Below the pieces are notes generated by a model. That model was given only the letters and a program-made list of their open reading frames with translations. It did no database searches and was not told where the DNA came from. The position numbers and the translations under genes are program-made. Below are positions 6,403 to 55,928 of a DNA stretch of 64,000 bases, piece by piece (the first letter of the stretch is position 1; each line of letters begins with the position of its first letter). Source of the stretch: Macrostomum hystrix (lineage: Eukaryota > Animalia > Platyhelminthes); contig CATNEN010000034.1 in NCBI GenBank assembly GCA_950097015.1, positions 3,906,001-3,970,000 on the forward strand, written 5' to 3'.

Positions 6403-7004
6403 CAGTGCTTCTGTTCTCACTTATTCGGTGAAGTACAAAGCACGCTAGATAAATCTGCCAGATGTACTTTTTATCGGCCTGTTGTTGTCCTTCTCTTATT
6501 TCTTCAAGACTTGGGAAAGAGAGAGAGAGGGCCGCCGGGAAGGGGTCGAGAGCATTCGGTGCACTGAGCGGAAAAGCGATTTTAGAGGCCACAGGAGGCG
6601 CGAGCAAAACTTTTTAGGCCCTGGCTAGTCGGACGGACGACACTTGGGGAGGGGGTTTGGAGTAGCCGAGAGCACTGCCGGGAGTGTGAGTTTCCTAATT
6701 CGCTAGCATTGGATCCCAGACCTGGAGTGAGAGAGACAGCCAGGCGGTGCCCAAAGTAAGGAGTGGCAAGAAGGAGAGAGAGAGAGAGGCAACTTTGAGC
6801 ACAGCGGAGATGCAGCGCGGAACAAGTGAGAGGCCTTGTGCTTCTTACCCTTTAGCAAGGCACCCCTGCTCCTCCTCTTCAGACCGGCGCCATTGCTGAG
6901 CCATATCGACCAATTATTGGTCGCCTCAGAGGCTACCCCAACCCACACCGCCCACCTCCACATATTTTTACGCGCTTTTTGCACATTCGCGTATTCTACT
7001 GTTA

Positions 7005-19916: not shown

Positions 19917-20618
19917 GTGCGGTGGCGTCCCAGTGCGCAGGGCTCTCCGGTCGATATTTCTCTCCAGCCAGCCTGGGATAGAAGAAAGAGAGAGGCTGGC
20001 GTTGACTGGCTGTCAGAGAGGGCAATTCTGTGTCCTAGAAATGATGCCGCCAACGAAATTAACTACCAACTCCTTCAGGAGTTGCCAGGTGCAGTTTTCA
20101 CCTACAAGTCAATTGATACAACGTTGACTGATGACACCGCTGTGGAGTATCCTGTTGAGTTTCTGAACTCTCTAGATCCTCCTGGAACTCCATCGCACAA
20201 CTTGCAGCTGAAAGTTGGGGCACCAATTATGCTCCTCCGCAACCTGAATGCGCCAAGGCTGTGTAACGGCACCAGACTGATAGTCAGGCGGCTCTTCCCA
20301 CACGTGATTGAGGCCACGATAATGACTGGATCTGGCAGAGGAGAGTCTGTGTTCGTTCCCCGGATTCCAATTATCCCCACGGACCTGCCATTTCAGTTCA
20401 AGCGACTGCAGTTCCCTGTGAGAGTGTGCTTTGCGATGACTATTAACAAGGCTCAGGGACAGTCGCTGAAGGTGGCTGGCATCAACCTGGAGACTCCTTG
20501 CTTCTCGCATGGGCAGCTTTATGTCGCCTGCTCCCGTGTTGGAACTCCAGCTGGCCTATTCATTTTCGCACCAAGGGGAAGAACGAAGAATGTGGTGTAT
20601 CCCCAGGCCTTGAGGTGA
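19917..20618 (+). pseudogene. Helitron helicase C-terminal fragment (233-aa ORF)
   Basis: Same translation as 11791-12492. Confidence 0.9.
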
Positions 20619-26703: not shown

Positions 26704-29700
26704 ATGGACTTCTTGCCTTACAAAGTAGTATCTGTTGCTAATCATAGTGAACCTGGCTATGATTGTCTGGTCATTATTGGAGATAATCCAAATGACCTAG
26801 GGGACAGATTTTCTGAAACGGCCACTACTGTTGGTGACTATTGCAAGGTAAGTTGGCAGGCTGAAGTCCATAGTTGTAAGACATTTCAATATCAATTTCA
26901 ATGGCTCAACCCCTGAATAATCCCTATGAACCACCCCACCAAATCAACAGGCGGACGCATCTGCCTTATCCGGCGGCGCCACTATCCTCTTACCGTCAGG
27001 TCCACAGGGCCGCCTCATTTTCAGCAACACCGGCCCTCTGAATCGAGACCAGGATGACGTGCGCCGACTCTACGACGCCTCAGCCGCTGGTCTTTCCCGA
27101 GCCATCAGCGCCGGCTCCAGGCAGCCAATTCTGGCTGTGGCCAAGCTGGCCAGCTTGCCGATTGGTCGGGAGACTTGGGCCAATCAGCTCGTCGCTGAGC
27201 GTGCCGCAATCCTTGGCGCAATGCAGGCTCTGTACACGCCATTGGAACTGCGCGAACTGCCCGGCCGTCCAGCCAAGATTGACCGCCTGGGCTTCCTAGC
27301 CGGTGCCGGCGCCTCCGTGGACGAAGCCGAGACCCGCCTGCGGCTGGCCATCGCCCTGGAGGCGGGCCGCACGCTGGCCAGAGACATCGGCGCCTCCGAT
27401 CCGGAGCGGATGACGGCGAGCCGGGCGGCCGAACTGATCCGATCTGTCATTGGTCCTGGCGTTACCATCGAAGTCGAGGACGCCGTCGACCCGGCCAAGT
27501 ATCCGCTGATGGCGGCCGTGGATCGCGCAGCCTCCGGCATTGCTAGACACGCAGGCCGCATCGTTCACCTGAGCTATCGCGGCTCCGGCGAGTGCCCCGA
27601 GCCGCTGTTCTTTGTCGGCAAGGGCATCACCTACGATACGGGCGGCGCCGACGTGAAGGCCGGCGGCCACATGGCCGGAATGCACAGGTGCCCACAGCTA
27701 CACAACACACCATTGAGCCAGATGTACACCCCAAATTTACCGCGCACTGCAATGGGGGTGTCTAGCTAAAGGAAAAAACGGTTTTACATGGGTGATATTC
27801 GAACTCCTGACCTTTTGGTCAGATTTCCGTACTGGGCTTCAAGCTTCCTATAATAATAATAATTGCAGAAGGGCTGCGGGCAATGTCACATCATTTGGTG
27901 ACACTATACCTGCAGCCAGAGAGGAGACAATTCTGCCCATTTCGCTGACTCCTGAACACACACGTACACCGATACTGTACGCAGGCACACGCTCACACAA
28001 GTCTGTACATCTGCCCTGACTTTCTCATCGTCAGGCAGTGTACAACAACAAACAACAACAAAGTACGCTGTCAGGTGGAAAAGGCAGCGTCACAGTGCAC
28101 GCTTCAGAGCCTGGGCGCGAACAAAGGCCGCACCGCCGGCAGTGTCCGGGGCGCCAGCATCGGCCAGCAGGCAGTCGACGAAACGCCGAGTTCGGGCCTG
28201 GCCGCGCCGGTAGGGTGCCTGCAGCGTTAGCAGCAGCACCTCCTGCACCGGCTGCGGGCAGTAGGACTCGGCGCGGATGATGTGGCCTGCAAGCTGGAGT
28301 CGCCGAAGTCGCAGCAGTTCACTCGGACGGGCCAGGCCGGCGCGACGATAGAGTGTACAGTGTAGTGTACAGTGTACACTCACTCTCATTGTGCCTTGGA
28401 GGTTGGCCCTCAAGGGCGTGAATTGCACGACAAGCCCCCAAGCCTTCTCTCCGCGGCTGCGCCCCAATTTAATGTGGCCTCACGGCGGAATCGAGCTCAG
28501 GGACCTTGGTGCGAGAGGCAAACGTGTTAACCGCTCTGCAACTGACCCCCTTACAAGCCTCCTTGTCTGACTGTCAAGACTTTAGATGAAGAAAAATGAA
28601 ATATAAACGAACTTTTAAAGGGTAATTTAGCTAAATACAATCTCAAGTAATAATTATTCTTAATTCCCACCCAGGGATAAATGCGGCGCCGCAGCCATCG
28701 CCGGCCTGTTCCGCACTCTCCAGCTGCTCCGTCCGCCACGCATTGAAGCTCACGCCAGTCTTGCCTTCGTGCGCAATTCAATCGGCTCGAATAGCTACGT
28801 GGCAGATGAGATCATCACTAGCAGGGCCGGGGTTCGAGTCCGGGTTGGCAACACGGATGCGGAAGGCCGCATGGTCATGGCCGACCTGCTCTGCCTCATG
28901 CGAGAGCGAGCCCTGACCCTGCCAAATCCATCCTCGGCCAGCCTATTCACCGTGGCCACTCTCACTGGTCACGTGATTCGCGCCTACGGAGTCCACTACG
29001 CGGCCGCAATGGACAATGGGCCAGCTAGGCTCAAGGGCACGAGCGGTCGGCTTCAGAAGGCTGGCGACCTCATTGCTGATCCATTCGAGGTAAGAAGCTA
29101 TTTAGGGTGTCTCAGAGCAAAGTTGTTACCGTATTTTATCACCAAGCTTAGATCAGGCTTAAGCGGTAACCCTTCGGGAGCAATATAATTATGCAGCTGA
29201 CCTCCCAGATCCTCAGGATTGGACAGCTGACCTCCCAGATCCTCAGGATTGGACAGCTGACCTCCCAGATCCTCAGGATTGGACAGCTGGCCTCCCAGAT
29301 CCTCAGGATTGGACAGCTGGCCTCCCAGATCCTCAGGATTGGACAGCTGGCCTCCCAGATCCTCAGGATTGGACAGCTGGCCTCCCAGATCCTCAGGATT
29401 GGACAGCTGACCTCCCAGATCCTCAGGATTAGGCAGCTAACCTCCCAGATCCTCAGGATTAGGCAGCTGACCTCCCAGATCCTCAGGATTAGTCAGCTGA
29501 CCTCCCAGATCCTCAGGATTAGTCAGCTGACCTCCCAGATCCTCAGGATTAACTAGGCAGTCAGTTTCAAGGACTATAGAAAGTTGAAAAGTCTAGAATA
29601 ATTAGGGTACAATTTGTGTCTCACAGTCCAACCCAAACTATTCAGATCTCGACGATTCGCCGCGAGGACTACAACATGGTGGAGCCGAAGACCGAAGCCG

Positions 29701-32339: not shown

Positions 32340-32422
32340 TGGCTTTGCTTCAGCTGAGATTCGAACTCCCGACCTCGCGACTAAATGTCCGAATCTCTCT
32401 AACCACTGGGCTAGAAGCCCCT
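32340..32422 (-). mobile_element. Isolated tRNA-like SINE head
   Basis: GGGGCTTCTAGCCCAGTGGTTAGAG...GAGTTCGAATC; A and B boxes present, cloverleaf not intact. Confidence 0.55.
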
Positions 32423-32497
32423 AATAAAAATATGAAATATAATTGAGTCATACGCCGCAAAATATCTGGTGACTCCGAGGCGAAACACTCTTTAGAG

Positions 32498-33096: not shown

Positions 33097-33267
33097 CTCT
33101 AGAGTATATTATATGCAATGGAGTGAACAATGAAAATGGGGGGCCTATTCAGAATAGAAATAGGATAGAAAGAGACACAGAGAGATGAAAATTCTCTTTA
33201 CAAATGCATGCACGCTAGCATATATAAGCGAAGCAGTGCCGCACACTGCCGTACACTCACATCTGCC

Positions 33268-34771
33268 ATGGAAGCCGAGCGAAAAGTCGCACAGCTGCTT
33301 GAACGACACGGAGCCAGTTTGAGCACTCTGAGTGACTCAGAGCTACTCAGCCTTGCCAATCGATTTCACACTAGCAGCTCAGTCTCCAAATATAAGCTTT
33401 GCCTTGGCTGGACATGCCGTCTAGCTCTGTACCTGCTGGCAATCTTTGTGCTGATGCTAACCCTGAGGTGCGAACTCGTGACCTCCGGCTATGCGACTCA
33501 GAGCACGGCCTGGCTGGCCGCCACGGACCTGGCCATGCAGAAGATGGTTCGCCGAGTGGCGCACGCGTTCGGGCTCTACGACACGGAGGCGGGCCGCCGT
33601 CTGGGCGCCTGCCTGCTGGCGAATCCCTTCAGGCAACCGGCTCCGCTCTGCTGCGGCTGCAGCCGGGCGCGAATAGTAATAGTGCAAGTCGACGCGGCCA
33701 ACCAGTCGACGGTTGCCAACCTCATCGACTCGCTTTACAATCGGGCGGTAACGCCGTTCATAGTTGTCGGACAGCCCGCAAGGCCTCGGCCAGAGGGAGT
33801 GGTCGACTTCGCCACATTGGCCAGCTTTGTAGCCGAAAATCGGCTGGAGTTCGAACGGGGCGCCAACCAGTTCCAGAGGCTGCCGCTGTACAATGCCGAC
33901 TCGGAGCTGCCGGCAGCTGATGTGCCAGCATTTCAGGATTTGTTTCCCAAGGAGACGACGGCAACGATACAACGACCCGAACTGCCACCTCCCGGACAGG
34001 TGATAATGCTGGAACAGCTGCGTTGACTTTTAGGGACTTTTTAGAAATCTTTCAGGGACCTTTCAGGGACCTTTTAGGGACCTACCTTTTAGGGAGTTTT
34101 AGATACATTTTAGGGCTTTCAGGCACTTTTCAAGAAACCCCCTATAACCTTTGAAGAAAATTTTTAATGACCTTTCAAGAGCCTTTCAAAAGACTCTTAA
34201 GGACCTTCTATGAATTTTTTTAGGACCTTCGTGCAATATTTCTGGGATCTTTCAGGGATCTTTCAGGTACTAACTATGGATCTTTGAAAAACTTTTCAGG
34301 GATTCTCTAGAATGCAATACCCACTCGCCACCTGTGCAGGTGCTCCTTTGGAAATTCTCCCACCTGTCGGCCGTGCGGGCCCTCCGCCGGCTGGTGCCCC
34401 GGCCTTCGTACTTCGGCCGACGCACTGAACGGTCTCTCACCGTCTCCCTTCTGCTGGCTGGCCGCTCTCTGCCTCCCAGCCGGCTCTACTCCGTCGGCGA
34501 CTTCGCCGAGACCCGCCTGCTGGCCTTCGCTGTGCCGCTCAGCGGTCGTCTAGAGGCGAGTCTGGCGCCGAAGGCCGCCTGCTGCGATGGCGCGAGGCCG
34601 CCGCGGACGGCGCCGATTCAACTGGCGCCGGGTCGGGCCCTGTTCTTCCCCACCGACTGCTACGAGCTGCTGATTGGCCGGTCAGCGGCCTCTGATGAAG
34701 ACAAGCCGGCACTGGTGCAGATCGGCTTCCTGTACAATGGCGCCCACCAGGCTGCGAGGATGACACCTTAG
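33268..34771 (+). CDS. C6orf89/BRAP-like type II membrane protein with C-terminal cupin-like region, paralog A, about 387 aa
   Basis: Exons 33268-33999 and 34340-34771 (phase 0). N-terminal TM, CLLANP...CCGC, TPFIVV, W..SHLSAVRALRRLVPRP, L.P...CC...L.PG..L..PT. The family call rests on recalled motif resemblance only. Confidence 0.75.
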
Positions 34772-35200: not shown

Positions 35201-35791
35201 TCATGGTTCTCATTGGTTCTCATTCTGTTCTCATCCCATGCTATGATGGTAAAAATCAAAATATTATACTTCTTGTGAATTAGTACATATAAAAAAATAA
35301 TTTAGTTAAACGAGTTCTCTATTGTACTAATTTAATCAGTTGAGTCAATGGACTGTGGAAGGCGCCACAAGCAATGGGGAATAAAGTGTCTTGATCAAGG
35401 AGCTCACAAAATTGTACTGAGCTTCGAACTCTCGACCACTCGGTCAGAAGTCTGAGCACTGCAGTCAATTCAAAGGGTGAGCACTGCGTGAGCTAACAAG
35501 TTTTGTTGAGTACGAATGACGAATTTAAGTTTCTGTAAAAGTTCTGTCAATCTGTTCAATGGACAGACTCAGAGAGAAGACAAAAAGATGGAACAATGAG
35601 AAGAGCGCGCAACCAGCGTGAGCCAGAAGAAATCGGTGAGTTTGAAGAAAAACGTGCTCAAACCTGCCTAGTGCCCTCCCTTTGAGTACGAAGGCTCAAC
35701 CTCGCTACTCGCGAATGAACAATGGGTCTATATACTCATAGAGAGTAGAATCAAGCCGAATGAGACACTTGTGATTCAGCAGCTCCCAGTC

Positions 35792-37085
35792 ATGCAGCGA
35801 GATCAGCGAGCGGTTCACCTAGTTGACAAGCACCTTCAGGCTGACGTTGCCTCGCCGGAGCTCTGCCAGCAGCTGGTCAGGCGGCTGTCTCAGCACCGCA
35901 GTGCCGGCTTATTCAACGGAATCTTTCGCATCGCCTTTCGCCTGATTCTAATCTACGCATTCTGCTCAGTTAGCCTGCACTGTTTTGAGAACACTTTCCC
36001 GAATGTGTCGAAGTCGGTGCGCACCGGCCGCACCCTGTCCTACCTGAACCTCATCTACCTGAAGTCCTACCGATGGCTGTCTGTTCAGGTTGGCCTCTAC
36101 AAATCCGAGATTTTGCACAGCCGCGACAGGGAAGCCTGTCTGATCCCAAATCCGTTCTACAAGCCGGCTGAGATGTGCTGCGACTGTCCGGAGCCAATCA
36201 GAACTCGCCAGGTGTCGCTCAATAACAAAGCGGGTCGGCTGGCCTATCGGCGCTCAGTGGATCGGCACGTGACGCCTTTTCACGTAGTGGACAGCGGGCA
36301 TCTACCAATCAGCTTTGCCCAGCTGCGCAGAACAGTGAGTGTTTTGGCTGAGACAGGATCTACTACTTGGTACAGCAATGCAAGGATTGCTAATCTATCC
36401 CATGGATGATGGAATAGAATGGATTGCTAATCTATCCAACTTGGATGATGGAATAGAATGGGTTGCTAATCTATGCCAGCACATCGGTGAGCAAGTCATC
36501 GCGTGCTCGAATCCGCAGGTGTTGGACGCCTGGTCGGACGTTAGTGCCGGTTCCAACCGAGTCGCCTCCACGCCAGCCGAAGGTCCGTCGACTCTGGCTG
36601 AACTCGTTGAGGCGGAGCAGCCGTCCGCTGCCACCCGGTTGACCTCCTGGATCTTCGGGCACATGTCCGCCATCCGGGCGATGCGCAAACTGGTGCCCAG
36701 ACCGCCGTTCATCCAGCCGGATGTTGAGACCAGCATGGCCAGGGCCTTCTACCTGCTGACCGGCTCCGAGCACACCTGGCTGGTCGGGGATCTGTCCCAG
36801 TTCCAGGGCCACGCGGTACTGATGGCACTGCACGGTAAACTCAGAGTGACTCTGTCGCACAAGCCAGCCTGCTGTCTTCGAAGCCATGGCAACGCCAGCG
36901 CGGAGTTGTCACCCGGTCAGGCTTTGGTGGTGCCAACCAGTTGCTTCCAGGTGCACTTCAGTCGTCATGACAACGCCGGGGCATACACATTGGCCTATCT
37001 GTTTAGTGTGTTCTCATCGACTGGCATCAAACAGGCGGCGCCGGTTACTGGCCGAGTTCCCGAGAATGATGACGTGGAGGACTGA
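35792..37085 (+). CDS. C6orf89/BRAP-like protein, paralog B, about 369 aa
   Basis: Exons 35792-36334 and 36519-37085 (GTGAGT...CCGCAG, phase 0) join the two ORF-track frames. CLIPNP...CCDC, TPFHVV, WIFGHMSAIRAMRKLVPRP, LSPGQALVVPT align with paralog A. Confidence 0.75.
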
Positions 37086-37420: not shown

Positions 37421-37612
37421 CGGGGGAAAAATAGCGAAGTCTTTGTACCTGTGTCAACAAAGTTCTATATTATATTGTTTTCACAGACAATTTTTTACAT
37501 TTTCTTGCACTATTGGAAAGTAAGTCTTTGTGCGTGTATTTTATTGGTACATTCAAAGAAATCAAATATAAGTGATTTGCGAGCCAATCATGAACCAAGT
37601 AGCCAATCCGAA

Positions 37613-37705
37613 TCCTGATTGTTTTTTTCGGACTGCGAGGCACCCGCGGCCCTGTAGTGAGGGCGCAGCTATTTAGACGCGCAGTCGTCATGGTTACCAT
37701 CAGGA
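37613..37705 (-). promoter_or_regulatory. SECIS element of SelW paralog 1
   Basis: Minus strand: helix I TCCTGAT/ATCAGGA; core ATGAC...CGAA; helix II GACTGCG/CGCAGTC; AAA 13 nt after ATGA; extra apical stem CCCT/AGGG. Confidence 0.88.
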
Positions 37706-37876
37706 CGCTTGTTGGATTTGTTTGAGCAACAACTACTGGCATGAAACTAATAACAAGAAACGAAATAGGTAGAGCAGATAGATTTTTAACGGCTTTGAAA
37801 TTTGTTATAAATTGTTATAAAACGTGTGATCGAGAAAATAAATCCAATTCTTGGCAATTTAAACTTTTTCAAGCTA

Positions 37877-38052
37877 GGGGCTTGTAGTCTATTGGTTAGA
37901 GCGTCGGACTTGAAGGTCGGAGGTTCGATTCCAGAATCAGTTTGCATCCTTTCGCAAGACACTTAACGCTGCATTGCTTCAGTTAACCCAGCTGTTAATT
38001 GGGTGTTAAATGGTTGTAAACCAGCATTTGCTGGGGTAATTGAGGGTGGGAG
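37877..38052 (+). mobile_element. tRNA-derived SINE (family A) with a CORE-like central domain, antisense in the SelW1 3' UTR
   Basis: Same head as the 5002 copy; CCTTTCGCAAGACACTTAACGCTGCATTGCTTCAGTTAACCCAGCTGTTAATTGGG resembles the MIR CORE consensus. Confidence 0.7.
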
Positions 38053-38146
38053 AGGGTTTCTTAAAAAAGATCCCAGATGAAAGTTCTCAGGATGACAACA
38101 GAAATAGTAATAAACAAATCTGTGTCAATATGCTATTCTCTAAAGT

Positions 38147-41100
38147 TCAACCTTCCCGCTTCTTCAATGCCGCCTCCAAGGCTGGCCAGACATCTTCGAC
38201 CTCCGGGAAGCGGCCTTCGCTCAGCTTGGAGAACACCTGGACTCCTTCGATTGTTACCTCGAATTGGTCAGTCTGCTCTCGCGTGGCCTCGCCTGTCACC
38301 TCGATTCGTCTGGCGGCTCCGGTACCGAGGCGGCCAAGAAGGTCCTGCTTCAGCCGCCTGTACCTGCCGCCATAGAATCAGGAGCCGCTGCGGGAGGGGG
38401 TTTCATAATCGCTTGAGCACTGATTCTGAGGCTCAAACGAGCGTATATTACAGCGTGTGCGATATGAATGGAATGGCTGAGATTTCTGACGTGAGATTTT
38501 GAGAAAACAGTCTGAACATTGAAGAAATCTCAGGTGAGATTTGAGAAACCAGACTAAACCTTGAAGAAATCTCAGGTGAGACTTAGAGAACCCAGACTTA
38601 ACTTTGAAGAAATCTCAGGTGAGATTTTGAGAAACCAGACTTAACTTTGAAGAAATCTCAGGTGAGACTTAGAGAAACCAGACTGAACTTTGAAGAAATC
38701 TCAGGTGAGATTTTGAGAAAACAGTCTGAACATTGAAGAAATCTCAGGTGAGATTTGAGAAACCAGACTAAACGTTAAAAAAGTCTCAGGTGAGATTTGA
38801 GAAACCAGACTAAACGTTAAAAAAGTCTCAGGTGAGATTTTGAGAAACCAGTCTCAACTTTAAAGAAGTTTCGGGTGAGATTTTGAGAAAAGTCTCAACT
38901 TTGAGTACTCTTAGGTGAGATTTTAAGAAACCAGTCTCAACTTTGAAGTTGTCTCAGGTGAGATTTTGATAATCCAGCCTTAACTTTGAAGAAATCGCAG
39001 GTGAGATTTTGATAATCCAGCCTTAACTTTGAAGAAATCGCAGGTGAGATTTTGATAATCCAGCCTTAACTTTGAAGAAATCTCAGGTGAGATTTTGATA
39101 ATCCAGTCTCAACTTTGAAGTTGTCTCAGGTGAGATTTTGATAATCCAGCCTTTACTTTAAAGAAATCTCAGGTGAGATTTTGATAATCCAATCTCAACT
39201 TTGAAGTTGTCTCATGTGAGATTTTGAGAAACCAGACTTAACTTTGAAGAAGTCTCAGGTGAGACTTTGAGAAACCAGACTTAACTTTGAAGAAGTCTCA
39301 GGTGAGATTTTGAGAAACCAGACTTAACTTTGAAGAAATCTCAGGTGAGACTTTGAGAAACCAGACTTAACTTTGAAGAAGTCTCAGGTGAGACTTTGAG
39401 AAACCAGACTTAACTTTAAAGAAATCTCAGGTGAGATTTTGAGAAACCAGACTTAACTTTGAAGAAGTCTCAGGTGAGACTTTGAGAAACCAGACTTAAC
39501 TTTGAAGAAGTCTCAGGTGAGACTTTGAGAAACCAGACTTAACTTTGAAGAAATCTCAGGTGAGACTTAGAGAAACCAGACTGAACTTTGAAGAAATCTC
39601 AGGTCACATTTTGAGAAAACAGTCTGAACATTGAAGAAATCTCAGGTGAGATTTGAGAAACCAGACTAAACGTTAAAAATGTCTCAGGTGAGATTTGAGA
39701 AACCAGACTAAACGTTAAAAAAGTCTCAGGTGAGATTTTGAGAAACCAGTCTCAACTTTAAAGAAGTTTCGGGTGAGATTTTGAGAAAAGTCTCAACTTT
39801 GAGTACTCTTAGGTGAGATTTTAAGAAACCAGTCTCAACTTTGAAGTTGTCTCAGGTGAGATTTTGATAATCCAGCCTTAACTTTGAAGAAATCGCAGGT
39901 GAGATTTTGATAATCCAGCCTTAACTTTGAAGAAATCGCAGGTGAGATTTTGATAATCCAGCCTTAACTTTGAAGAAATCGCAGGTGAGATTTTGAGAAA
40001 CCAGTCTCAACTTTGAAGTTGTCTCATGTGAGATTTTGAGAAACCAGACTTAACTTTGAAGAAGTCTCAGGTGAGACTTTGAGAAACCAGACTTAACTTT
40101 GAAGAAATCTCAGGTGAGATTTTGAGAAACCAGACTTAACTTTGAAGAAGTCTCAGGTGAGACTTTGAGAAACCAGACTTAACTTTGAAGAAGTCTCAGG
40201 TGAGACTTTGAGAAACCAGACTTAACTTTGAAGAAGTCTCAGGTGAGACTTTGAGAAACCAGACTTAACTTTGAAGAAATCTCAGGTGAGATTTTGAGAA
40301 ACCAGACTTAACTTTGAATAAATCTCAGGTGAGATTTTGAGAAACCAGACTTAACTTTGAAGAAATCTCAGGTGAGATTTTGAGAAACCAGACTTAACTT
40401 TGAAGAAGTCTCAGGTGAGACTTTGAGAAACCAGACTTAACTTTGAAGAAATCTCAGGTGAGACTTTGAGAAACCAGACTTAACTTTGAAGAAATCTCAG
40501 GTGAGATTTTGAGAAACCAGACTTAACTTTGAAGTTGTCTCAGGTGAGATTTTGAGAAACCAGACTTAACTTTGAAGAAATCTCAGGTGAGATTTTGAGA
40601 AACCCGACTTAACTTTAAAGAAATCTCAGGTGAGATTTTGAGAAACCAGACTTAACTTTGAAGAAGTCTCAGGTGAGACTTTGAGAAACCAGACTTAACT
40701 TTGAAGAAATCTCAGGTGAGATTTTGAGAAACCAGACTTAACTTTGAAGTTGTCTCAGGTGAGATTTTGAGAAACCAGACTTAACTTTGAAGAAATCTCA
40801 GGTGAGATTTTGAGAAACCCGACTTAACTTTAAAGAAATCTCAGGTGAGATTTTGAGAAACCAGACTTAACTTTGAAGAAGTCTCAGGTGAGACTTTGAG
40901 AAACCAGACTTAACTTTGAAGAAATCTCAGGTGAGATTTTGAGAAACCAGACTTAACTTTGAAGAAGTCTCAGGTGAGACTTTGAGAAACCAGACTTAAC
41001 TTTGAAGTTGTCTCATGTGAGATTTTGAGAAACCAGACTTAACTTTGAAGAAATCTCAGGTGAGATTTGAGAAACCAGACTGAACCTTGAAGAAGTCTCA

Positions 41101-41250
41101 GGTGAGATTTTGAGGCACAACTCAGGTATCAACTCAGGTGAATTCCTAGGTAAGATTTTGAACTGAAATTTCATTGATAATAGGACGTATTCTGTATATT
41201 CAATAGCCACTAACTTACCAATGAACCACATGGACTCTGACTTTCACCAT
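38147..41250 (-). CDS. SELENOW: Selenoprotein W-like (Rdx family) paralog 1, CxxU motif, 90 aa
   Basis: Exon 1 41250-41219 (MVKVRVHVVH+TG, donor GTAAGT); exon 2 38387-38147 (C-GS-U-FYGGRY...FEVTIEG...FSKLSEGRFPE); Sec TGA at 38380-38378; SECIS downstream. Confidence 0.88.
38490..41110. repeat. 43-bp satellite (TCTCAGGTGAGATTTTGAGAAACCAGACTTAACTTTGAAGAAA), about 60 copies, filling the SelW1 intron
   Basis: 43-nt periodicity with blocks of variant units repeated at larger scale. Confidence 0.95.
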
Positions 41251-41842
41251 TGCGAATGCTTCGATTGACCTAAAATTGTTTAACCAAAGAACAGTTGTTG
41301 AGAATTGGCAGAATGTTTTTACGAAATTACAAGTTGTAAAATAATAATTTTCCTTCCTTTCGTATAGAACAGCGAGAGACAGCGATGCGTTTTCTATAAA
41401 ATGTACTTTTACAGTGAAGCTTTTTCTAACTCGCCTCTGTCAGACCTACCTAACCCAGCCTCTGTCCCATCAAACAATGATGTACAGTCTCCAGCTCTCT
41501 ATGCACAGTGATAGTGTTCTCAATCGTGCAAGAAAGAATGAGAAAATGAAGAATAAATTCCACACAGAACCGGTTTTCAACCGGTTCAGAGTTGTCCAGG
41601 TTTGTGTTCCTTAGTTTTTTTGACTAAGATGAAATGAATAATAAAACTAATTAGCAAACAAACAAGAATATTTGTTTAAAACTCTGTTTGCTTAAAAAGT
41701 TAGATTTTAAATTTTAATTTATTTGTTAATGTTGAATAAGCAACTTTTTTGTTAAAATTAATTTTCAATAGCCTAGAATTTTTTGCATAGGGGCTTTCCC
41801 CGAATCAGATCGAGGCACCGTCGGGATATTCAACGCTCCGGC

Positions 41843-41932
41843 TCTGGTACGGCTTGGTCGGACCGCACGGCCAGTGGCTCCCCCCGTCTAGGAAGAGGAC
41901 TGTTTAATCGCGCGGTCGTCATGGTTACCAGA
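41843..41932 (-). promoter_or_regulatory. SECIS element of SelW paralog 2
   Basis: Minus strand: helix I TCTGGTA/TACCAGA; core ATGAC...CGAC; helix II GACCGCGCG/CGTGCGGTC; AAA; apical hairpin CTCTTCC-TAGAC-GGGGGGAG. Confidence 0.9.
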
Positions 41933-42053
41933 TGCAGAGCGGGAACACCCTAAGAGCTCTCACTGAGCGGGTGGAGTTTGAGTTCTAACTATTAGTAGCG
42001 GAGCGTCAGACTAAAGGCGTCTAATTTTTAGTGCTGTTTTCTAAGAAAATCCG

Positions 42054-43144
42054 CTACTTCTTCAGCGCAGCCTCCACGGCGGGCCAGACGTCGCTAACTT
42101 CCGGGAAGCGGCCTTCGCGAAGCTTGGAGAAGGCCTCGACACCGTCGATGGTCACCTCGAATTTCCCGGTCCTCGTTGGCGTCGCCTCGCCCGACACCTC
42201 GATTTTGCTGGCGGCCTCGCTGCCCAGGCGGCCCAGCAGGTCCTGCTGGAACCGCCGGAACCGGCCGCCGTAGCCTCAGGCTCCGCTGCGGGCGGGCGTG
42301 GGTTCGATTCCCAATTTTCAGGTGAGATACTCTCCCTTATCTACCTACAAGACTGACTGGCCAGGTGAGATACTCTCCCTTATCTGCCTACAAAACTGAC
42401 TGGCCAGGTGAGATACTCTCCCTTATCTGCCTACAAGACTGACTGGCCAGGTGAGATACTCTCCCTTATCTGCCTACAAGACTGACTGGCCAGGTGAGAT
42501 ACTCTCCCTTATCTGCCTACAAGACTGACTGGCCAGGTGAGATACTCTCCCTTATCTGCCTACAAGACTGACTGGCCAGGTGAGATACTCTCCCTTATCT
42601 GCCTACAAGACTGACTGGCCAGGTGAGATACTCTCCCTTATCTGCCTACAAGACTGACTGGCCAGGTGAGATACTCTCCCTTATCTGCCTACAAGACTGA
42701 CTGGCCAGGTGAGATACTCTCCCTTATCTGCCTACAAGACTGACTGGCCAGGTGAGATACTCTCCCTTATCTGCCTACAAGACTGACTGGCCAGGTGAGA
42801 TACTCTCCCTTATCTGCCTACAAGACTGACTGGCCAGGTGAGATACTCTCCCTTATCTGCCTACAAGACTGACTGGCCAGGTGAGATACTCTCCCTTATC
42901 TGCCTACAAGACTGACTGGCCAGGTGAGATACTCTCCCTTATCTGCCTACAAGACTGACTGGCCAGGTGAGATACTCTCCCTTATCTGCCTTATCTATTT
43001 AGCAGTTAAACAGCCACTTTAAGTTAGATAGCAACTAAGCAGGTCATTCTACGAGTATAAATCATTTAATGTAACGCTCAGTAGATAAATATAAAACGCA
43101 CAAATAGCTTACCAGTAAACCACGTGAACTTTAACCTTGCCCAT
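42054..43144 (-). CDS. SELENOW: Selenoprotein W-like paralog 2, canonical YCGAUGY, 87 aa
   Basis: Exon 1 43144-43113 (MGKVKVHVVY+TG, donor GTAAGC); exon 2 42285-42054 (C-GA-U-GYGGRF...GEATPTRTGKFEVTIDG...FSK); Sec TGA at 42278-42276. Confidence 0.92.
42318..42990. repeat. 43-bp minisatellite (CAGGTGAGATACTCTCCCTTATCTGCCTACAAGACTGACTGGC), about 15 copies, in the SelW2 intron
   Basis: Near-perfect tandem units. Confidence 0.95.
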
Positions 43145-43569
43145 ATCACTATAACTAGCCTAGTATTTGTTGAGTTTGCGACCTGTTCTTTCTGTAATCT
43201 CAATGCAGAATTTGCGGTGAATGCAGCAGAACTATAGCAGGACTTGCTCCGGCTGAGGCGAGAGAAAACTCACCCAGCCCATTTTTATAAGGCTCTTTGA
43301 GCATATAGCTAGGCATCTCTCTGCCCATGGGACAATGGAGACGAAGTGTACAGTCAGTACGAGTACAGTGCGCAGTGGCCAATGGTTACAAAATGACCAA
43401 TAGTTTGTCATGAAGGTTGAAGTGCAAATGTCTGGAAAAATCTGAAAATGCTCAAACACAGAATGCTAAAGTTTTTTGTTAATTTGAGAGTATAAGAAAA
43501 TTAGAGATAAAAAATTTAGTATCTGCATGAATAAAATATCTGGGTTTGTAATAGTGACAAACATATTAA

Positions 43570-44285: not shown

Positions 44286-46162
44286 CTACTGCATCTGAAG
44301 CATCAAGAGGATCTTCTTCAATGTCTTGTAGCTCAGTGCATAGTAGCAGCTCATATAAGCTTGGTTAAAGTTTCTATCAGTACTAGAGTACATTCCATTC
44401 GGGTTGAAGTGACTGCAGCTGCGGAACCAGAAACCGGAGGAGCCATATAATTGGCTGCAAGAACTTGAGCTCAAATCATTGTCGCGATCCTTCGTGGAGA
44501 ACATGCTGCTGTTCACCAACGCCAAGCAGTCACCGGAGGTGTTGGAGTTACTACTCAGATAGGCTGCGTAACTCATGGCATAGTTTGAGTCGGAATTTAG
44601 GATTTTGAAGCCCGAGAACTCTGACACGAAGAATCTGCCATCGATAGTGAGCATTTCGACACGCAGAGTGCGGCCAGTTGGCTGCGTCAGGCTGTGCATC
44701 TGTTTCAGACCTGCGTAATTCATCAATTATCCGAGAATGAGAGAGAGACTTTGAGACTGACCATGTTAACTACTAGTATATTTAACTCATAGTCCGGTGT
44801 GTTTCCTTTTGAAAGCTGAATCGCTTTCCTAAATCTTGGATCTTAGTGTAATTCAGACATTCCTGACACCATTTTCCATACACCCTGTTACCTACCCTCA
44901 TTCCCTACACTCCCATTCCCGACCCCCTTCACTATACCCCATTCCCTACACCTCATTCCCTTCACTCCATTCCCTACACCCATTCCCTCCGACCCATTCC
45001 CACCACTCCATTCCCAACACCCCATTCCCTTCACTCCACTCCCTACACCGCATTCCCTTCACCCCATTCCCTTCACTCCATTCCCTTCACCCCAATCCCT
45101 CAAGCCCATTCCCTTCACCCCAATCCCTCAAGCCCATTCCCTTCACCCCAATCCCTCAAGCCCATTCCCTTCACCCCAATCCCTACACCCCATTCCCTTC
45201 ACCCCATTCGTTAGCAAGAGCTCACCGGCCCAGAACTCGGTGGAGTTGCCGAATCCGGCCTCGTAGTCGGTCCAGCCTCTGTCGAAGCTCACCTGGCCAT
45301 TCTGTCTCTGCTCAATCACCCAGAAGCGTCTCTGGCCAATCAACAGCTCGAACATCGGGTACGGCGGCTGTGGAAACTCTTTGCTGAATACGGAGCCGCC
45401 AGATGGCGCTACACAGAAGCGGGAGCTATCAGAGAGGGTGCAGATTCCGTCGCTAAAACTAAACGATAGCCACCTGTCTGACTGACTGCTAAGCACCGAG
45501 CACTCTAGGTCGCTGCGGGCGATCATCCTGGCTGTTTCAGGGGTGCAGCTGTCGCCAGACGAAGGCACGGCACCGAAGTGGATTGTCTGCACTGAAGATA
45601 AATCAATATGAAGGCTTTCATACTGAGAATGAGTGTAATCTCACTCTTACACTCCCACTCAAACTCACATGATCTCTCATTCTCTCACTCTCACTCTCTC
45701 ACATCACTCACTCTCACACTCTCACATCTCTTACTCTCTCACTGTCACACTTTCTCACTCACGCTGACAGTCAGCACACTCACACTGACAGTCAGGACAC
45801 TCACATTGACAGTCAGGACACTCACATTGACAGTCAGGACACTCACACTGACAGTCAGGACACTCATACTGACAGTCAGGACACTCATACTGACAGTCAG
45901 GACACTCACACTGACAGTCAGGACACTCATACTGACAGTCAGGACACTCATACTGACAGTCAGCACACTCATACTGACAGTCAGGACACTCATACTGACA
46001 GTCAGCACACTCATACTGACAGTCAGGACACTCACACTGACAGTCAGGACACTCACACTGACAGTCAGGACACTCACCAAGTTCAGCATTGACAAGTAGA
46101 GACGGAGACCGAAGAACAGCCGTGTATGCTAGGACAAAGGCAAATGCCGTAAACAGATACAT
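44286..46162 (-). CDS. Secreted fibrinogen-related protein: signal peptide, PAN/apple-like module and FBG domain, about 291 aa
   Basis: Exons 46162-46078, 45591-45226 and 44710-44286 are phase-consistent. FBG motifs VIEQRQNGQVSFDRGWTDYEAGFG, EFWAGL, LRVEM, MFSTKDRDND, C...Y.SSGFWFRSC...NPNG.Y. Confidence 0.9.
44860..45210. repeat. Degenerate (CCCATTCCCTTCA)-like repeats in fibrinogen-gene intron 2
   Basis: Low-complexity imperfect units. Confidence 0.75.
45750..46077 (-). repeat. 21-bp minisatellite (GTGAGTGTCCTGACTGTCAGT) starting exactly at the 5' splice site of fibrinogen-gene intron 1
   Basis: About 15 units; the first unit is the authentic donor. Confidence 0.95.
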
Positions 46163-46859: not shown

Positions 46860-47010
46860 GAACAGCCGCAGCTGTTGCACGCGTGCATCTGAAGACTGCG
46901 TACGGCTGTTCAGTCCATGGACTGGGAGGACGCAACACCCAGTGGAGTCGGGAATCGAACCCCCGACCGTTAAGTCGTGAGTCTGACGCTATAACCACAA
47001 AGCCACAACC
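46860..47010 (-). mobile_element. tRNA-derived SINE (family A), central domain absent
   Basis: Head GGTTGTGGCTTTGTGGTTATAGCG...GGTTCGATTCC joined directly to the tail shared with the 4788 copy; a tail fragment also lies near 46560. Confidence 0.8.
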
Positions 47011-50411: not shown

Positions 50412-52613
50412 TTATTTCTCATTATCCAAAACAAAATCGACTACACTTTCCGGAATCGGTAGATGATCGGCAATCGCACTATCTGGGCGCTGTACAATGT
50501 CCACATTCCCAGCTGGTGGCGACATGATCGATGTGGGCATAGAGAAATCGGAGTTAGCTGGACTCCAGACTGACACGCTAGCCACAGAGCTAGTCAGATC
50601 GCTCATAACATCCATCGACTCAGAGGCACCACCGCGCCTGCGCAGAGGCACATAGCCCGGGACATCTTCCTCCCTTGGAATCATTCCGCGCAGGACAACA
50701 CAATCCTGAAGTGAGCCGGAGCGCTTCACGATCATCGTTCTAGGAGATAGCGGATCGTCGCAGAACTTAGCAAGAGGCGTCGAATTGAAGTAGGTCTCCG
50801 GCTTCGGTGTCAGATTGAGTATTCTAATCGTGCCAGAAGTTTCGTTTGTTGAATAGCAAACAGTCACAGTTGCTGTTGTCTCCGAGAATCTCAGTAATGC
50901 AAAGTCTCTTTTTTCTTTTTCTTTTTCGACGTACTGCTTAATAGTATCGATAGCGTCAGTCTTAGAAATGAACCCATAGAGTAGGTCATTCATCCATAGA
51001 CTATGGGCATGATCTTTTATAAACTTGACGCACGTGTAAACAAAGTCCCATAGAGACTTTCCCTTGCCTATGAATGGTACCTTGATCAGGTCGTCAAACG
51101 TAATACAATTAGGATTTCCCGTTTTTGTCATTAGCTCCTGACACTTCGTCAAAAAGTAAAATCGGTTCTGACGTTCCAATCCGTACCTTGTTTCGTCAAA
51201 AATATAACGGTCCATCAAGTCGACGCACTGATCAGCGCTAATTGACTTAAGAACATCGAAGCCCATGCGAACTGGCATAGGAAACATGTTCTCGTAGGCA
51301 ATACATGCAGACGACTCCATTCTCTGGTTGTCATTTGTGATGAATGTCACGGGCCGAGACAGACAGTCGATCGACAAATCTTTACAATGAGCCCGAAAAT
51401 GGAAAGCAAATTTCTGCGCCCAAACAGGATTCTTTCGCGTGGGCAACTTGGTAACTTGAAGCGATATTTCCGCTGAAAACTTGTTGCCTCGCATCAGTTG
51501 GCGCCCATCTCTATCGCGTAAGGAAATGGCGCTCGCGTTCCTCAACTCATCCCATTTCAGGCTGCTCGCGTTCGCCTCAAGATTGCGGACGCAATCTTCA
51601 TTTAGTAGCGTAACATCGACAATCAATGCTTCGAACTGGAAGAGCTTACTGAAGAAGTCACCGAATAGTAACTCAATGTTGAACTTTACGTGCTTCTTCT
51701 CGCGAATGACTTGGCATGACTGGGTTAGGACAACCAGTGATTTCGATAGCAGGTGCTTTAGCTTGACATTAAAATCTGTGCACCCTAAAGCTTCGCTGGC
51801 TCTGTGGAGCTTCTCAAAGTCAACTGCTTCAACTAAAGAGTTGATTTCGAAGCGCTTTATATCATCGTTGACCAGCTCCCTCTTAGAATGAACGGAAAAA
51901 TAGTTTGCCAATTCATCGACAGCGGTTGTTAAATTATCAAATGATAATTGATTAAGAAATTCGCTCTCATTAAAAGCGCACAGAGCCAGTTCAACATCCT
52001 TGAGTTGGTTAGTGTCCTTAGTGAGACGAATTCTTTTCTGGAAATGTGTGAGTATGATGGCCTTCTCCGACACGCTATCGGAAGACAGTTCCCTTTTAAG
52101 CAATGTAATTCTTCCTGAAAATGCAGCCGGCTTTGAATGTTTCTGGAGCAATGAGGCTTCAAAGTCGAGAATTTTCCTGACCGCAAGCAGGAATGAGTAG
52201 CCATTGTCGGCCAGGAATTTCTTTTTGAACTCAGTCTCATAGCACACTTTTCTGTCTTCAAAGGCTAGCCTCTGGCGATCGGAATTGTTGCTGGAATCAC
52301 AAGAGCATGCCAGCCTATCCATACCCTGATAGTAGCTCAGCACGCGATCATGAAAATCAGTTACAAACGCGTTCATGCCCGTCTTTGGCTGCAGGAGCAG
52401 AAGCTTGTTATTGTCAGCTGAGACATCGATATTGTAATTAAGCAACTCCAGTCGTTCAGCCACAATGCACTCATCAAGGATGCTGCGCAAGTCTCTAGTG
52501 AAGAAATCGCCCATAATTTGCCGGTATAGCCAAAGCAAACTCGGCAGAACGGACCGGTTCTCCGATATCAGCGACTGAATCTTTGAAAACTGACCGCCAG
52601 ACTGACATGCCAT
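50412..52613 (-). CDS. STAT: STAT-family transcription factor, single exon, 733 aa
   Basis: N-domain-like LY...DFFTRDLRSIL; linker PVTFITNDNQ...ACIAYEN; SH2 LWMNDLLYGFISK...ALLRFSET; phosphotyrosine tail PGYVP; Ser/Pro-rich C-terminus. Confidence 0.88.
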   Translation of the reverse strand: MACQSGGQFSKIQSLISENRSVLPSLLWLYRQIMGDFFTRDLRSILDECIVAERLELLNYNIDVSADNNKLLLLQPKTGMNAFVTDFHDRVLSYYQGMDRLACSCDSSNNSDRQRLAFEDRKVCYETEFKKKFLADNGYSFLLAVRKILDFEASLLQKHSKPAAFSGRITLLKRELSSDSVSEKAIILTHFQKRIRLTKDTNQLKDVELALCAFNESEFLNQLSFDNLTTAVDELANYFSVHSKRELVNDDIKRFEINSLVEAVDFEKLHRASEALGCTDFNVKLKHLLSKSLVVLTQSCQVIREKKHVKFNIELLFGDFFSKLFQFEALIVDVTLLNEDCVRNLEANASSLKWDELRNASAISLRDRDGRQLMRGNKFSAEISLQVTKLPTRKNPVWAQKFAFHFRAHCKDLSIDCLSRPVTFITNDNQRMESSACIAYENMFPMPVRMGFDVLKSISADQCVDLMDRYIFDETRYGLERQNRFYFLTKCQELMTKTGNPNCITFDDLIKVPFIGKGKSLWDFVYTCVKFIKDHAHSLWMNDLLYGFISKTDAIDTIKQYVEKEKEKRDFALLRFSETTATVTVCYSTNETSGTIRILNLTPKPETYFNSTPLAKFCDDPLSPRTMIVKRSGSLQDCVVLRGMIPREEDVPGYVPLRRRGGASESMDVMSDLTSSVASVSVWSPANSDFSMPTSIMSPPAGNVDIVQRPDSAIADHLPIPESVVDFVLDNEK

Positions 52614-53333: not shown

Positions 53334-55928
53334 TCAGCTGAGGCCTAGGAAGTCGTCCATCAGGGTGCCAACGCCGAAGATGTCGCTGGCGTCGACTCGC
53401 ATGCCCATAATGCGAATGCGAATGTCGTCGTCCTCCTGGATGACGCTCTCCTCGTCTTCGGTCTTGTAGCACGGCGGATTGCTGGTCGGGTCAAACTTCA
53501 TGTTGCCCGGTATGCTGTGCCGCGAGATGAAGACGGACAGGGGCCCGACCTCTGTGAAGATGCCCACCTTATTGACTTGGGTCACCACGGCGTCAAGCAC
53601 CTCGCCTTTGAATGGTCGGAAGACAACGGCGTTGTATTTAACCGGGTAGAGCACGAAGCCTCGACCTGGTTGGATTATGCCATCGCCGACGTGAGTAACT
53701 CGGCTAACGCACACAATAAATCCGTACCTGGAAGCATTAGAGGAATATTATTATGAACGGCTTGTTGTTGCCAAGTCATCTGGATTTATTTAAGTATATG
53801 TAGGGCCAGAGAAAGAGATAAAATAAGAACTGAAGGTCTGAATATGGCCTGAGGAAAGGCTGGAAGCCACTCATAATGGCCATGATGCCACCATTTAAGG
53901 TATGATGCCACCTTAATGCCACTTATGAAGGCTAAGATGCTTTTTTAAGCTTAGATGCCACTTTAAAAGGCCTGAGGAAGAGGCTGAAAAGGGCCTGAGG
54001 ATATCGTCAAGTCAATAAATTCACTCACTTTCCATTACAGGTGCCTTCCACCTCAGAGTGGAGCTTTTTGGTAATGATCTGTTGGATTTGTGGCCCAAAG
54101 TATCGCGGATGCAGAAGGATTTCATGCTCCAGAACAACCTGACCAATTATTAATTATTAAGAAAGATTTTATTTAATGGCAAATAAAACGGAATCTAGCT
54201 TAGTTTTTAGGCTTCAAGAAACAATATATTGTTTAATTCTACATCTGAAAATGCAAAAGAACAAATTACAAGTGTACACTGTATTTTCATACTCAAAAGA
54301 AAACACTACAGATGGTAGTACAAGGTTGCAGTGGAAGATCCATACAATACTTGTGATAAAACATTCAGTTTCACGTGTACTTAAGTCAAGCAATAGGGTC
54401 TCTGGCTATTTGGCATACCATTTGTGCCAATTTATTTCCTTGAGTGCATTCATGTAGAAATATTTCTCTAATAAATATATTATCACCTTAGTGGCAAACA
54501 AATTCTTTTCTTTTATTTATTGAAAACAATTAACTAATGTTGAACACATCCTTTTTCATGTTTATATGTGAAAAGCGATGCTAGTTTTTTTACAAAAAAG
54601 CATCTTAATATACCTATTTTCATGTATCTAGTACATATATCTATGCAAGTACAGAATGAGCTTATTAGCTTTGCTATAACATCAGGATCAAAGAGTCTTC
54701 AGGGAGACAATGCAATAACATTATTACAAAGTAGAATAGCCAAGAATTATTTCGTTATCAGTTAATTTTTTCCATTTTGCAAATGTATCTACTCTTACCC
54801 TCCTAATCCTTCTAAACAATATAATAATGGACTTGGCCTCATGGACTAATGGATTGGCCAGTTAGGAAGAGTTGTTTTTCTTGTTGACAAGTTATAAAAT
54901 ATCCCTGCTCCATTTTGAGTATAAGCAAATCCTATAACTATCATCTATCTTTAACTTATCAGACAACTTGTACACTTCTTGCTCAATATTCCTGAACTCA
55001 TTTCTTGTCCTGACCAATAAGCTATTTGTGTGTTTCCTGTGTGGTGCAAACACATTTGAAATTCAAATTGTCAAGTGAATATATGTTGATATCATGCAAT
55101 AGCTAGATAATGCATTAGCAAATAGAGGCTAGGTGACCAAGAAAATACTATGGGTGAATTAAGCATGTGAGCTCTGCTACTGCTCTACTGATATTTAAAT
55201 GATTTTCTGTCCATTGAAATTTGAATTGAGAGGCTGAAATATAAATTAGTCTCAATTCTCAATTAAGAGGCTATTATTCAAAATTGTCAGTCAAATTCTA
55301 TCTATAAATTGGCAATCTAGGTCAAAATCAATGACTTAAATGACTCAATGGTTTAAAGTCTAGAAAATGAAGTTACAATAATTGTCAGATGAAAGAGTTA
55401 AAAATGGAAAACATACGTAAAAATGATAATATAATCTAATAATATGCCTATTCAACAAAGTGGTTAGTACAAGATATTTCATCAGATATATTCAATTTTG
55501 AGTAAAATGAGTATAATGAGTATACTTTTTGCTATTTAAAAAATATTACACATAAACAACATAGCCACATAAAAAGCTGACAGAGGCCATCACAGTTTGT
55601 AAAGCTTTTGGAAGCTTTGAAACACAAAAATACATAATGTTTTTCAGGATTTGGGTTTTAAAATACTTAAAACATTTATAAACAAAAAACATAGCATTTA
55701 AAAATTAATGCTGTTTGCTTGAATGTATACATTGTTTTCACAAGATTGTCCTATATATTTGGCTGATACTATATGTATGCACAATGGTAAGTTGCCCGTC
55801 TTAAGTGCATATTTTATACAGTTAATTGTCAGTTAATACTATGAGAAAAAATTATAAAAGTCATTCACTTAATTCTGATGCGAAATATTAACTTTACTTA
55901 ATAAAATATTACTTACAAAGTAGAACAT
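53334..55928 (-). CDS. POLR2G: RNA polymerase II subunit RPB7, 171 aa
   Basis: Exons 55928-55917 (MFYF, donor GTAAGT), 54138-54029 ([16 protein letters not shown]...VEGTC) and 53727-53334 (YGFIVCV...[14 protein letters not shown]...GPL..FIS.H.IP...GTLMDDFLG). Confidence 0.95.

Follow-up and report, generated by a model that had tools for sequence, protein, structure and literature searches.

Two adjacent, predicted SelW-type selenoprotein genes with long-apex SECIS-like elements in Macrostomum hystrix

Sequence analysis led to two adjacent two-exon genes, A and B, on the minus strand of the window (the whole stretch of 64,000 nucleotides that was analysed), with predicted proteins of 87 aa (A) and 90 aa (B) (Table 1). 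Judged from their sequence, both are very probably (about 0.88) functional paralogous genes for small SelW-type selenoproteins, which would be spliced and have an in-frame UGA recoded through a SECIS. The evidence supports reading each as an intact Rdx/SelW-type selenoprotein gene under purifying selection with its own conserved SECIS-like element. A sequence-only reading had proposed two 2-exon genes absent from the ORF track, and all of its coordinates check out in the sequence; a plain ORF scan finds only GTG fragments of 47 and 50 aa at the exon-2 regions. It had also described first exons of 32 nt that end in TG and splice to C-GGN-NNN-TGA, resulting in CGSU and CGAU; the splice signals and frames match this predicted splice. 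Downstream of the predicted Sec TGA, 73 codons follow in gene A up to TAG (42056-42054) and 76 in gene B up to the terminal TGA. Between 38300 and 46000 on the minus strand the only TG/GTRAG sites are the donors of the two genes, and alternative first exons of this form were rejected, none being present within about 7.7 kb. The antisense ORFs at 38040-38375, 38077-38502 and 42031-42273 were likewise rejected as genes and regarded as shadows of the GC-rich exon 2.

Table 1. Features of the locus (positions in the window; a slash marks a predicted splice boundary)
Feature	Position	Strand	Details
Gene A coding exon 1	43113-43144	-	32 nt, ATG at 43144; Met to first two bases of Cys codon; beta-strand 1; ends TG/GTAAG
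Gene A phase-2 intron	42286-43112	-	827 nt, GT-AG
43-bp minisatellite array in intron A	42319-42991		15.7 copies; repeat analysis
Gene A coding exon 2	42054-42285	-	Acceptor CAG/C at 42285; end of Cys codon, Gly-Ala-Sec, Rdx domain, TAG; CGAU
Gene A in-frame TGA, predicted Sec	42276-42278	-	GGA GCC TGA; aligned with TGA in homolog loci L005, L006 and L010-L013
SECIS A, type II, long apical stem	41843-41932	-	AUGA 41922-41919, AAA 41905-41903, GA 41859-41858; folding z -3.45
AATAAA, candidate poly(A) signal of gene A	41718-41723	-	Sequence motif
Gene B coding exon 1	41219-41250	-	32 nt, ATG at 41250; ends TG/GTAAG
Gene B phase-2 intron	38388-41218	-	2831 nt, GT-AG
43-bp minisatellite array in intron B	38491-41114		61 copies; repeat analysis
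Gene B coding exon 2	38147-38387	-	Acceptor CAG/C at 38387; end of Cys codon, Gly-Ser-Sec, Rdx domain, terminal TGA; CGSU
Gene B in-frame TGA, predicted Sec	38378-38380	-	GGC TCC TGA; same position as in gene A and homologs
Gene B terminal TGA	38147-38149	-	456 nt upstream of SECIS core
tRNA-derived SINE-like fragment (A and B boxes)	37875-37938	+	Antisense in gene B 3′ UTR
SECIS B, type II, long apical stem	37613-37705	-	AUGA 37691-37688, GA 37629-37628; folding z -2.09
AATAAA, candidate poly(A) signal of gene B	37540-37545	-	Sequence motif

The pieces downstream of the UGA scored 36.9 and 33.9 bits with Pfam Rdx (PF10262, cut-off 22.6) and 47.9 and 43.0 bits with TIGR02174 (cut-off 34.2), which bears out the Rdx/SelW fold that had been proposed downstream of the CxxU. 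These searches were run exon by exon; the 32-nt first exons are too short for a separate search. A structure model of exon 2, which comprises the protein without strand 1, had a pLDDT of 78; the top 22 Foldseek rows retrieved with it were all SelW or SelW-related Rdx proteins (TM about 0.6, E 0.04-0.8), with no row reaching E 0.001. Named eukaryotic matches of the profile search were mostly SelW and the best PDB sequence matches were mouse SelW and C17orf37, while a single-sequence word search gave no match. Each product would be a single small domain that lacks a signal peptide, a membrane insert and a long N-terminal extension. In both genes the CxxU, composed of the split Cys codon and GGN NNN TGA, follows strand 1 as it does in the homologs, given the predicted splice. 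The claim that CxxU together with a SECIS defines eukaryotic SelW was too narrow, as this combination marks the whole Rdx group and is common to SelW, SelT, SelH and SelV (PMC13437758). The assignment to the SelW type, as against SelT, SelH or SelV, is based here on size, homology and intron position.

The UGA is aligned with the Sec position in both copies and in all homologs checked, with conservation on both sides. TGA occupies the same place in three uninterrupted homolog contigs (L005, L012 and L013) and comes after the same TG/GT intron boundary in Bulinus (two genes), Hymenolepis and Lucifuga. In these snail, tapeworm and fish genes, as in A and B, a short first coding exon is followed by a phase-2 intron that splits the Cys codon. 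Owing to the conservation of the TGA in homologs, a pseudogene with a nonsense TGA was rejected. The NCBI models of the Bulinus, Hymenolepis and Lucifuga homologs drop the Sec codon or mis-model the N-terminus; at the Bulinus locus (L006), where two SelW genes are adjacent, both keep the Sec codon and each has a SECIS-like hairpin, the model fuses the pair. Such faults agree with the earlier expectation that automated annotation would truncate or miss genes of this kind, and the main gain of the present work is one of annotation, namely two selenoprotein genes missed by ORF-based pipelines, as in these three public models.

Exon 2 of A and B has 77% DNA identity and 72% protein identity (dN 0.175, dS 0.75, ratio 0.23), and an allelic or assembly duplicate is ruled out because of this dS. 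Outside the minisatellite arrays, the alignment of the two genes is confined to the two coding exons and 31 nt of the SECIS. In the tree they are each other's closest relative (support 99/94), as local duplication predicts, and an old local duplication appears to be the best explanation of the pair. The lineage-specific duplication with Sec kept twice that had been suggested stands with regard to the sister pair and to the UGA and SECIS-like hairpin of both copies, but the word lineage-specific has a relative meaning, a metagenome scan having returned no close relative. Tandem duplication of SelW is ordinary and of a kind already known: zebrafish SelW2a/b is a published tandem pair in which both are selenoproteins (PMC3316567) and Lottia SelW1_a/b a published adjacent pair, SelW1_a being reported without its first exon (PMC3828610). 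A and B add one more to these adjacent paralogs and to those of Bulinus, Sec being kept in both copies in zebrafish and Bulinus, and all are probably independent duplications. The SelW family expands in aquatic animals, and Schmidtea has six SelW. Between the two copies, B has the longer tree branch (0.26 vs 0.07), lacks the conserved Gly after Sec, which is replaced, and has a changed TG-K-F loop. Together with the less strongly folding SECIS B (z -2.09 vs -3.45), the mismatches in its upper helix II, the SINE-like piece in its UTR and the known invertebrate clusters with inactive members (PMC3473315), these traits could mean that only one copy is an efficient selenoprotein gene, and that its partner, more probably B than A, has low expression or is in early decay. 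We find this unlikely, given that B retains its open frame, splice signals, UGA, poly(A) signal and a SECIS core with paired changes; the low dN/dS and a conservation confined to functional islands point to long selection, although a pairwise ratio is compatible with very recent decay.

Each 3′ UTR bears one SECIS-shaped hairpin made of helix I, the A-UGA core, helix II, AAA, helix III and GA, and none of 2000 dinucleotide-shuffled versions of either UTR contained such a hairpin. The UGA/GA core, the only invariant part of the SECIS core (PMC2647825), is intact in both, the purine before it is A, and the apical AA and helix II are present. Between A and B, 19 of 20 cells of helix II stay paired; one change is two-sided and two are one-sided, in a comparison of two sequences only. 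The apical part (AA-to-GA) measures 43-44 nt in both hairpins vs 17-32 nt in homologs and a published limit of 15-39 nt (PMC2375036), and the 3′ core reads CGAC/CGAA instead of KGAW, the K position being occupied by C and the core containing a C-C pair. The size range and the KGAW consensus are typical of SECIS elements rather than strictly required. Rfam gave no SECIS match for either hairpin even at E 10, and a published loose SECIS pattern misses both. Of the complete SECIS claimed for each 3′ UTR, all parts were recovered and chance formation is disfavored by the shuffles, while the long apex, the C at the K position and the lack of an Rfam match count against it. A reading in which translation ends at the UGAs, or in which the genes are pseudogenes or stem from an assembly duplication, with hairpins formed by chance, would be in line with the two failed searches and is extremely improbable in view of the UGA at the homologous Sec position, the purifying selection on the coding sequence downstream of it, the dS value and the conservation of hairpins that shuffling does not produce. 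Additionally, Sec codon and SECIS are 354 and 687 nt apart, more than the minimum of 51-111 nt (PMC3753652), which counts for SECIS-driven recoding. The long mini-stem SECIS of Ostreococcus, Chlamydomonas and Dictyostelium are likewise type II with an extended apical helix, such long stems being rare in other organisms (PMC2375036), whereas here the host is an animal, A precedes the core and C stands at the K position. The extra-long SECIS hairpin is the only unusual feature of the pair. Tentatively, the long-apex, C-core form may be the normal one in this animal, in which case standard SECIS finders would undercount its selenoproteome. An animal SECIS with such an apex and a C-C core pair offers a test of how large an element SBP2-dependent recoding and SECIS search tools can accommodate.

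Concerning the position within the family, A and B share with SELENOW/SelW1 (mouse 2NPB; Bulinus, Hymenolepis) a length of about 87-90 aa without signal peptide, the HVV(Y/H)-CGxU N-terminus, the phase-2 intron in the Cys codon, the GEATP..TG.FEV segment and an AUGA/AA type II SECIS. However, SelW1 ends in HSKK.GDGFVD and not in FSKL..GRFP, its SECIS apex is 19-28 nt in Bulinus and Hymenolepis, and it has 4-5 coding exons against two here, so that Sec lies here in the last coding exon. The SELENOW2/MIEN1 (Rdx12) branch (PMC3316567, PMC13134290) shares CxxU, the position of the first intron and an FSKL/SKL..FP C-terminus, but in A and B the loop that precedes the FEV strand is longer and SelW1-like, and strand 1 reads HVV(Y/H), where SELENOW2 has NIEY. 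The best tree, from which the MIEN1 and mouse SelW sequences of PDB are absent, places the pair outside the SelW1-like clade and beside bacterial Rdx rows (95/86), on a long branch and with an alignment of about 70 columns. This placement, the FSKL..GRFP terminus, which is bacterial or SelW2-like, and the intronless exon 2 would suit a bacterial Rdx gene grafted between a eukaryotic first exon and a eukaryotic SECIS. Such an origin has next to no probability: by the AU test, a placement with eukaryotic rows of SelW1-like or SelW2-like type is not rejected (p 0.149; the single SelW2/MIEN1 marker being P0213 of Lucifuga, assigned by features), the GEATP..TG.FEV segment has its eukaryotic form, homologs from algae and protists likewise end in FP, and the exon-2 GC3 (0.86 and 0.71) matches that of a host gene (0.81 in RPB7). 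The best matches of RPB7, at 79-80% with none identical, indicate an animal, though not its phylum.

In the proposed mechanism, removal of the phase-2 intron from each pre-mRNA would complete the Cys codon and bring the UGA in frame three codons on (CxxU). The UGA/GA kink-turn core of the SECIS in the 3′ UTR would bind SBP2 and recruit eEFSec and Sec-tRNA, and the UGA would be read as Sec. The two products may be thiol/selenol redox proteins whose CxxU acts on protein partners, an example for mammalian SelW being 14-3-3. Next to the observed frames, domain, motif, intron position, purifying selection and conserved hairpins, the expression, splicing and Sec insertion of A and B are predictions, and their redox role and partners are extrapolated from mammals. 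Mammalian SelW mRNA drops sharply in low selenium through junction-dependent decay; since their Sec codon lies in the final coding exon, the mRNAs of A and B are predicted to escape it, and a SelW of this layout lends itself to testing whether exon arrangement determines the selenium sensitivity of an mRNA. The shared strand and intron phase, the distance of about 470 nt between the poly(A) signal of A and the ATG of B, and an AG acceptor-like site shortly upstream of both ATGs could also fit a single locus with alternative outputs, where exon 1 of A is spliced to exon 2 of B or co-transcription is followed by trans-splicing. This is very unlikely, each gene having its own start, donor, stop, SECIS and AATAAA, and it would alter the transcript structure, not the selenoprotein reading. 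The terminal TGA of gene B is most likely a plain stop. There is a slim chance that it is partly read as a second Sec, generating a selenium-controlled, membrane-anchored SelW isoform. Such readthrough would lengthen the protein by at most 46 residues, in a segment that contains another UGA and a hydrophobic run; the best Kyte-Doolittle mean over 19 residues is 2.0, which 1.4% of base shuffles equal, a percentage that was obtained post hoc and is optimistic.

The 43-bp arrays of the two introns were not accepted as proof of common origin, their whole-unit identity being no better than that of shuffles (p 0.87); a 10-mer common to both beats shuffles (p 0.002), and GTGAG/CTCAC cores are also found in other arrays of the window. 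A tRNA search of the 64-kb window found none, and copies related to the SINE-like fragment are located near 4944-5000, 32387-32423 and 46945-46976.

Genes A and B, the tandem selenoprotein pair, share an identical layout on the minus strand (see the table), and their models were searched one exon at a time. The sequence-only reading had described two hidden two-exon genes of selenoprotein W (SelW), each with a Sec-TGA and its own SECIS; this pair proved to be real and correctly described, and we put the probability that it is so, and most likely functional, at about 0.88. The split codon is completed as TGC, leading to CGAU in gene A (87 aa) and CGSU in gene B (90 aa). On the minus strand between 38300 and 46000, the TG/GTRAG motif occurs only at the two exon-1 donors, both at equal distance from the ATG and within sequence encoding the same beta-strand. 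A plain ORF scan over the two genes detected just short internal fragments. Additionally, AG acceptor-like sites lie just 5' of both ATGs (43145-43160 and 41251-41275, minus strand) and could mark trans-splicing or an intron within the 5' UTR.

Coordinates of the selenoprotein genes, their SECIS cores and ordinary neighbouring genes
Feature	Position or length	Strand	Remarks
Gene A coding exon 1	43144-43113	-	32 nt, ends TG/GTAAG
Gene A intron	827 nt	-	acceptor CAG/C, exon 2 from 42285
Gene A exon 2	from 42285	-	Gly-Ala-TGA, then 73 codons, TAG 42056-42054
Gene B coding exon 1	41250-41219	-	32 nt
Gene B intron	2831 nt	-	
Gene B exon 2	from 38387	-	Gly-Ser-TGA, 76 codons, terminal TGA 38149-38147
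SECIS AUGA	41922 (gene A), 37691 (gene B)	-	
RPB7	53334-53714	-	ordinary neighbour
Leucyl aminopeptidase	27059-29188	+	ordinary neighbour
Fibrinogen-domain gene	44286-45592	-	ordinary neighbour
Leucine-rich-repeat-like gene	5116-6420	-	ordinary neighbour

The post-UGA pieces exceeded the curated cut-offs of both Pfam Rdx (36.9 bits for gene A, 33.9 for gene B) and TIGR02174 (47.9 and 43.0, respectively). Mouse SelW and C17orf37 were the top sequence matches among solved structures (E 0.007, weak alone). For the gene A piece, an AlphaFold model with pLDDT 78 gave SelW or SelW-related Rdx proteins in all of the best 22 Foldseek rows, with E-values of 0.04 or higher throughout. The closest library proteins are ~50% identical over partial length, so that no close relative is on record. 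Both genes would encode small redox proteins of the CxxU type; in mammals, SELENOW uses its Sec to bind 14-3-3 (PMC8508763).

Three homolog loci (L005, L012 and L013) read uninterrupted through Tyr-Cys-Gly-Ala-TGA-Gly-Tyr. In the genomic homologs of the snail Bulinus (two genes), the tapeworm Hymenolepis and the fish Lucifuga, the first exon is the same and stops at TG/GT, and the next exon opens with the last Cys-codon base and GGN NNN TGA. Judging by these loci, the UGA of genes A and B would be read as Sec. Exon 2 is 77% identical between the genes in DNA and 72% in protein, with a dN of 0.175 against a dS of 0.75. This divergence is too great for alleles or an assembly duplicate, which are ruled out, and the comparison shows purifying selection downstream of the UGA. 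Arrays aside, what can be aligned between the two genes is confined to exon 1, exon 2 and the SECIS. The arrays of the two homologous introns (42319-42991 in gene A, 38491-41114 in gene B) consist of 43-bp units with only a 10-mer in common; their common origin is possible but unproven, as similar GTGAG cores are present in other arrays of the window. A B-box remnant (42301-42311) directly precedes the gene A acceptor, and dispersed tRNA-derived SINE-like fragments were seen at 4944-5000, 32387-32423, 46945-46976 and 37875-37938 (+), the last one antisense within the gene B 3' UTR.

In each 3' UTR there is a single hairpin, made up of helix I, the AUGA, AAA at a spacing of 13 nt, helix III at the apex and a GA at its close. 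Folding z-scores were -3.45 (SECIS A) and -2.09 (SECIS B), and comparable matches appeared in 0 of 2000 shuffles of each UTR, with limits that had been relaxed after the elements were seen. Helix II pairing is kept across one two-sided and two one-sided changes, which, coming from two sequences, is only suggestive; helix III folds in both despite largely different sequence. The two elements are nevertheless atypical. Specifically, the AA-to-GA length (44 nt in A, 43 nt in B) is above the limit of 15-39 nt (PMC2375036) and above the 17-32 nt of candidate SECIS measured equally in six homolog genes, and the 3' cores are CGAC and CGAA versus the KGAW consensus, although UGA/GA is the sole invariant part of the SECIS core (PMC2647825). 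An Rfam search of the region reported no SECIS. SECIS with long mini-stems occur in Ostreococcus, Chlamydomonas and Dictyostelium, but are said to be rare in other organisms (PMC2375036). A further GTGA..AA..GA hairpin at 44409-44464 (+), antisense to the fibrinogen-domain exon and with no upstream selenoprotein seen, fits the published pattern, probably by chance.

Concerning recoding, SBP2 on the kink-turn core, with eEFSec and Sec-tRNA, would have the UGA read as Sec, following the established mechanism (PMC3753652, PMC2792357). The UGA-SECIS distances (354 nt in gene A, 687 nt in gene B) exceed the minimum of 51-111 nt (PMC3753652). Compared with at least 4-5 coding exons in the homologs, genes A and B have two, which places Sec in the last one, a structural difference of possible consequence. 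In one study, human SelW mRNA showed the highest selenium sensitivity, a response linked there to nonsense-mediated decay and resisted by Sec codons in last exons (PMC4105750); if this mammalian rule holds and the 3' UTR carries no intron, the mRNAs of both genes are predicted to escape such decay. Gene B also stops at a UGA followed by A, and readthrough would add 46 residues including a hydrophobic stretch. Such an extended protein is very improbable, given that gene A has no equivalent and that hydrophobic stretches arise easily from T-rich UTR; in Dio2 a second UGA serves mainly as stop (PMC3316567).

Genes A and B pair in trees (support 99/94 and 98/96), so the duplication is later than the split from every sampled relative. 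The AU test (p 0.149) rejected neither the SelW1-like nor the SelW2-like grouping; the N-terminal strand and GEATP segment are like SelW1, whereas the FSKL..GRFP end is like SelW2 or bacterial Rdx. Duplicated SelW is already well known, and this pair adds another case: zebrafish SelW2a/b are tandem and both selenoproteins (PMC3316567), Lottia SelW1_a/b are adjacent and Schmidtea has six SelW genes (PMC3828610), while selenoprotein clusters are common in invertebrates (PMC3473315). That the tandem arrangement is ordinary is shown by Bulinus truncatus (L006 3001-11100, JAGDYQ010000298.1), where two SelW genes of five coding exons lie in tandem, both carrying a 25-nt Sec mini-exon and a SECIS-like hairpin of normal size (4630, 11052). 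The NCBI model KAH9489531.1 merges both as one hypothetical protein, which bears out the earlier warning that automated annotation would probably truncate or miss such genes; for the SelW-type selenoprotein genes of Hymenolepis weldensis (L010 4259-4740) and Lucifuga dentata (L011 3172-5870) the NCBI models omit the Sec codon and have a wrong first exon. What remains of interest in genes A and B is modest: SECIS of excessive size, a layout of two exons and, in gene B, a terminal UGA.

Two genes without Pfam matches adjoin the locus (33208-34771 and 35620-37085, both plus strand), the second with a conserved-looking domain interrupted by a 39-bp mini-array intron. Three near-identical, Helitron-like PIF1 helicase fragments, one inverted, are located at 11791-14772 (-) and 19917-20618 (+), and a LINE reverse transcriptase fragment (17940-19028) lies inside a region bounded by inverted 61-bp arrays. 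Finally, a single-exon ORF of 733 aa at 50412-52613 (-) has no Pfam or NCBIfam match; read by eye, the C-terminal half looks similar to a divergent STAT, with linker and SH2-like stretches.
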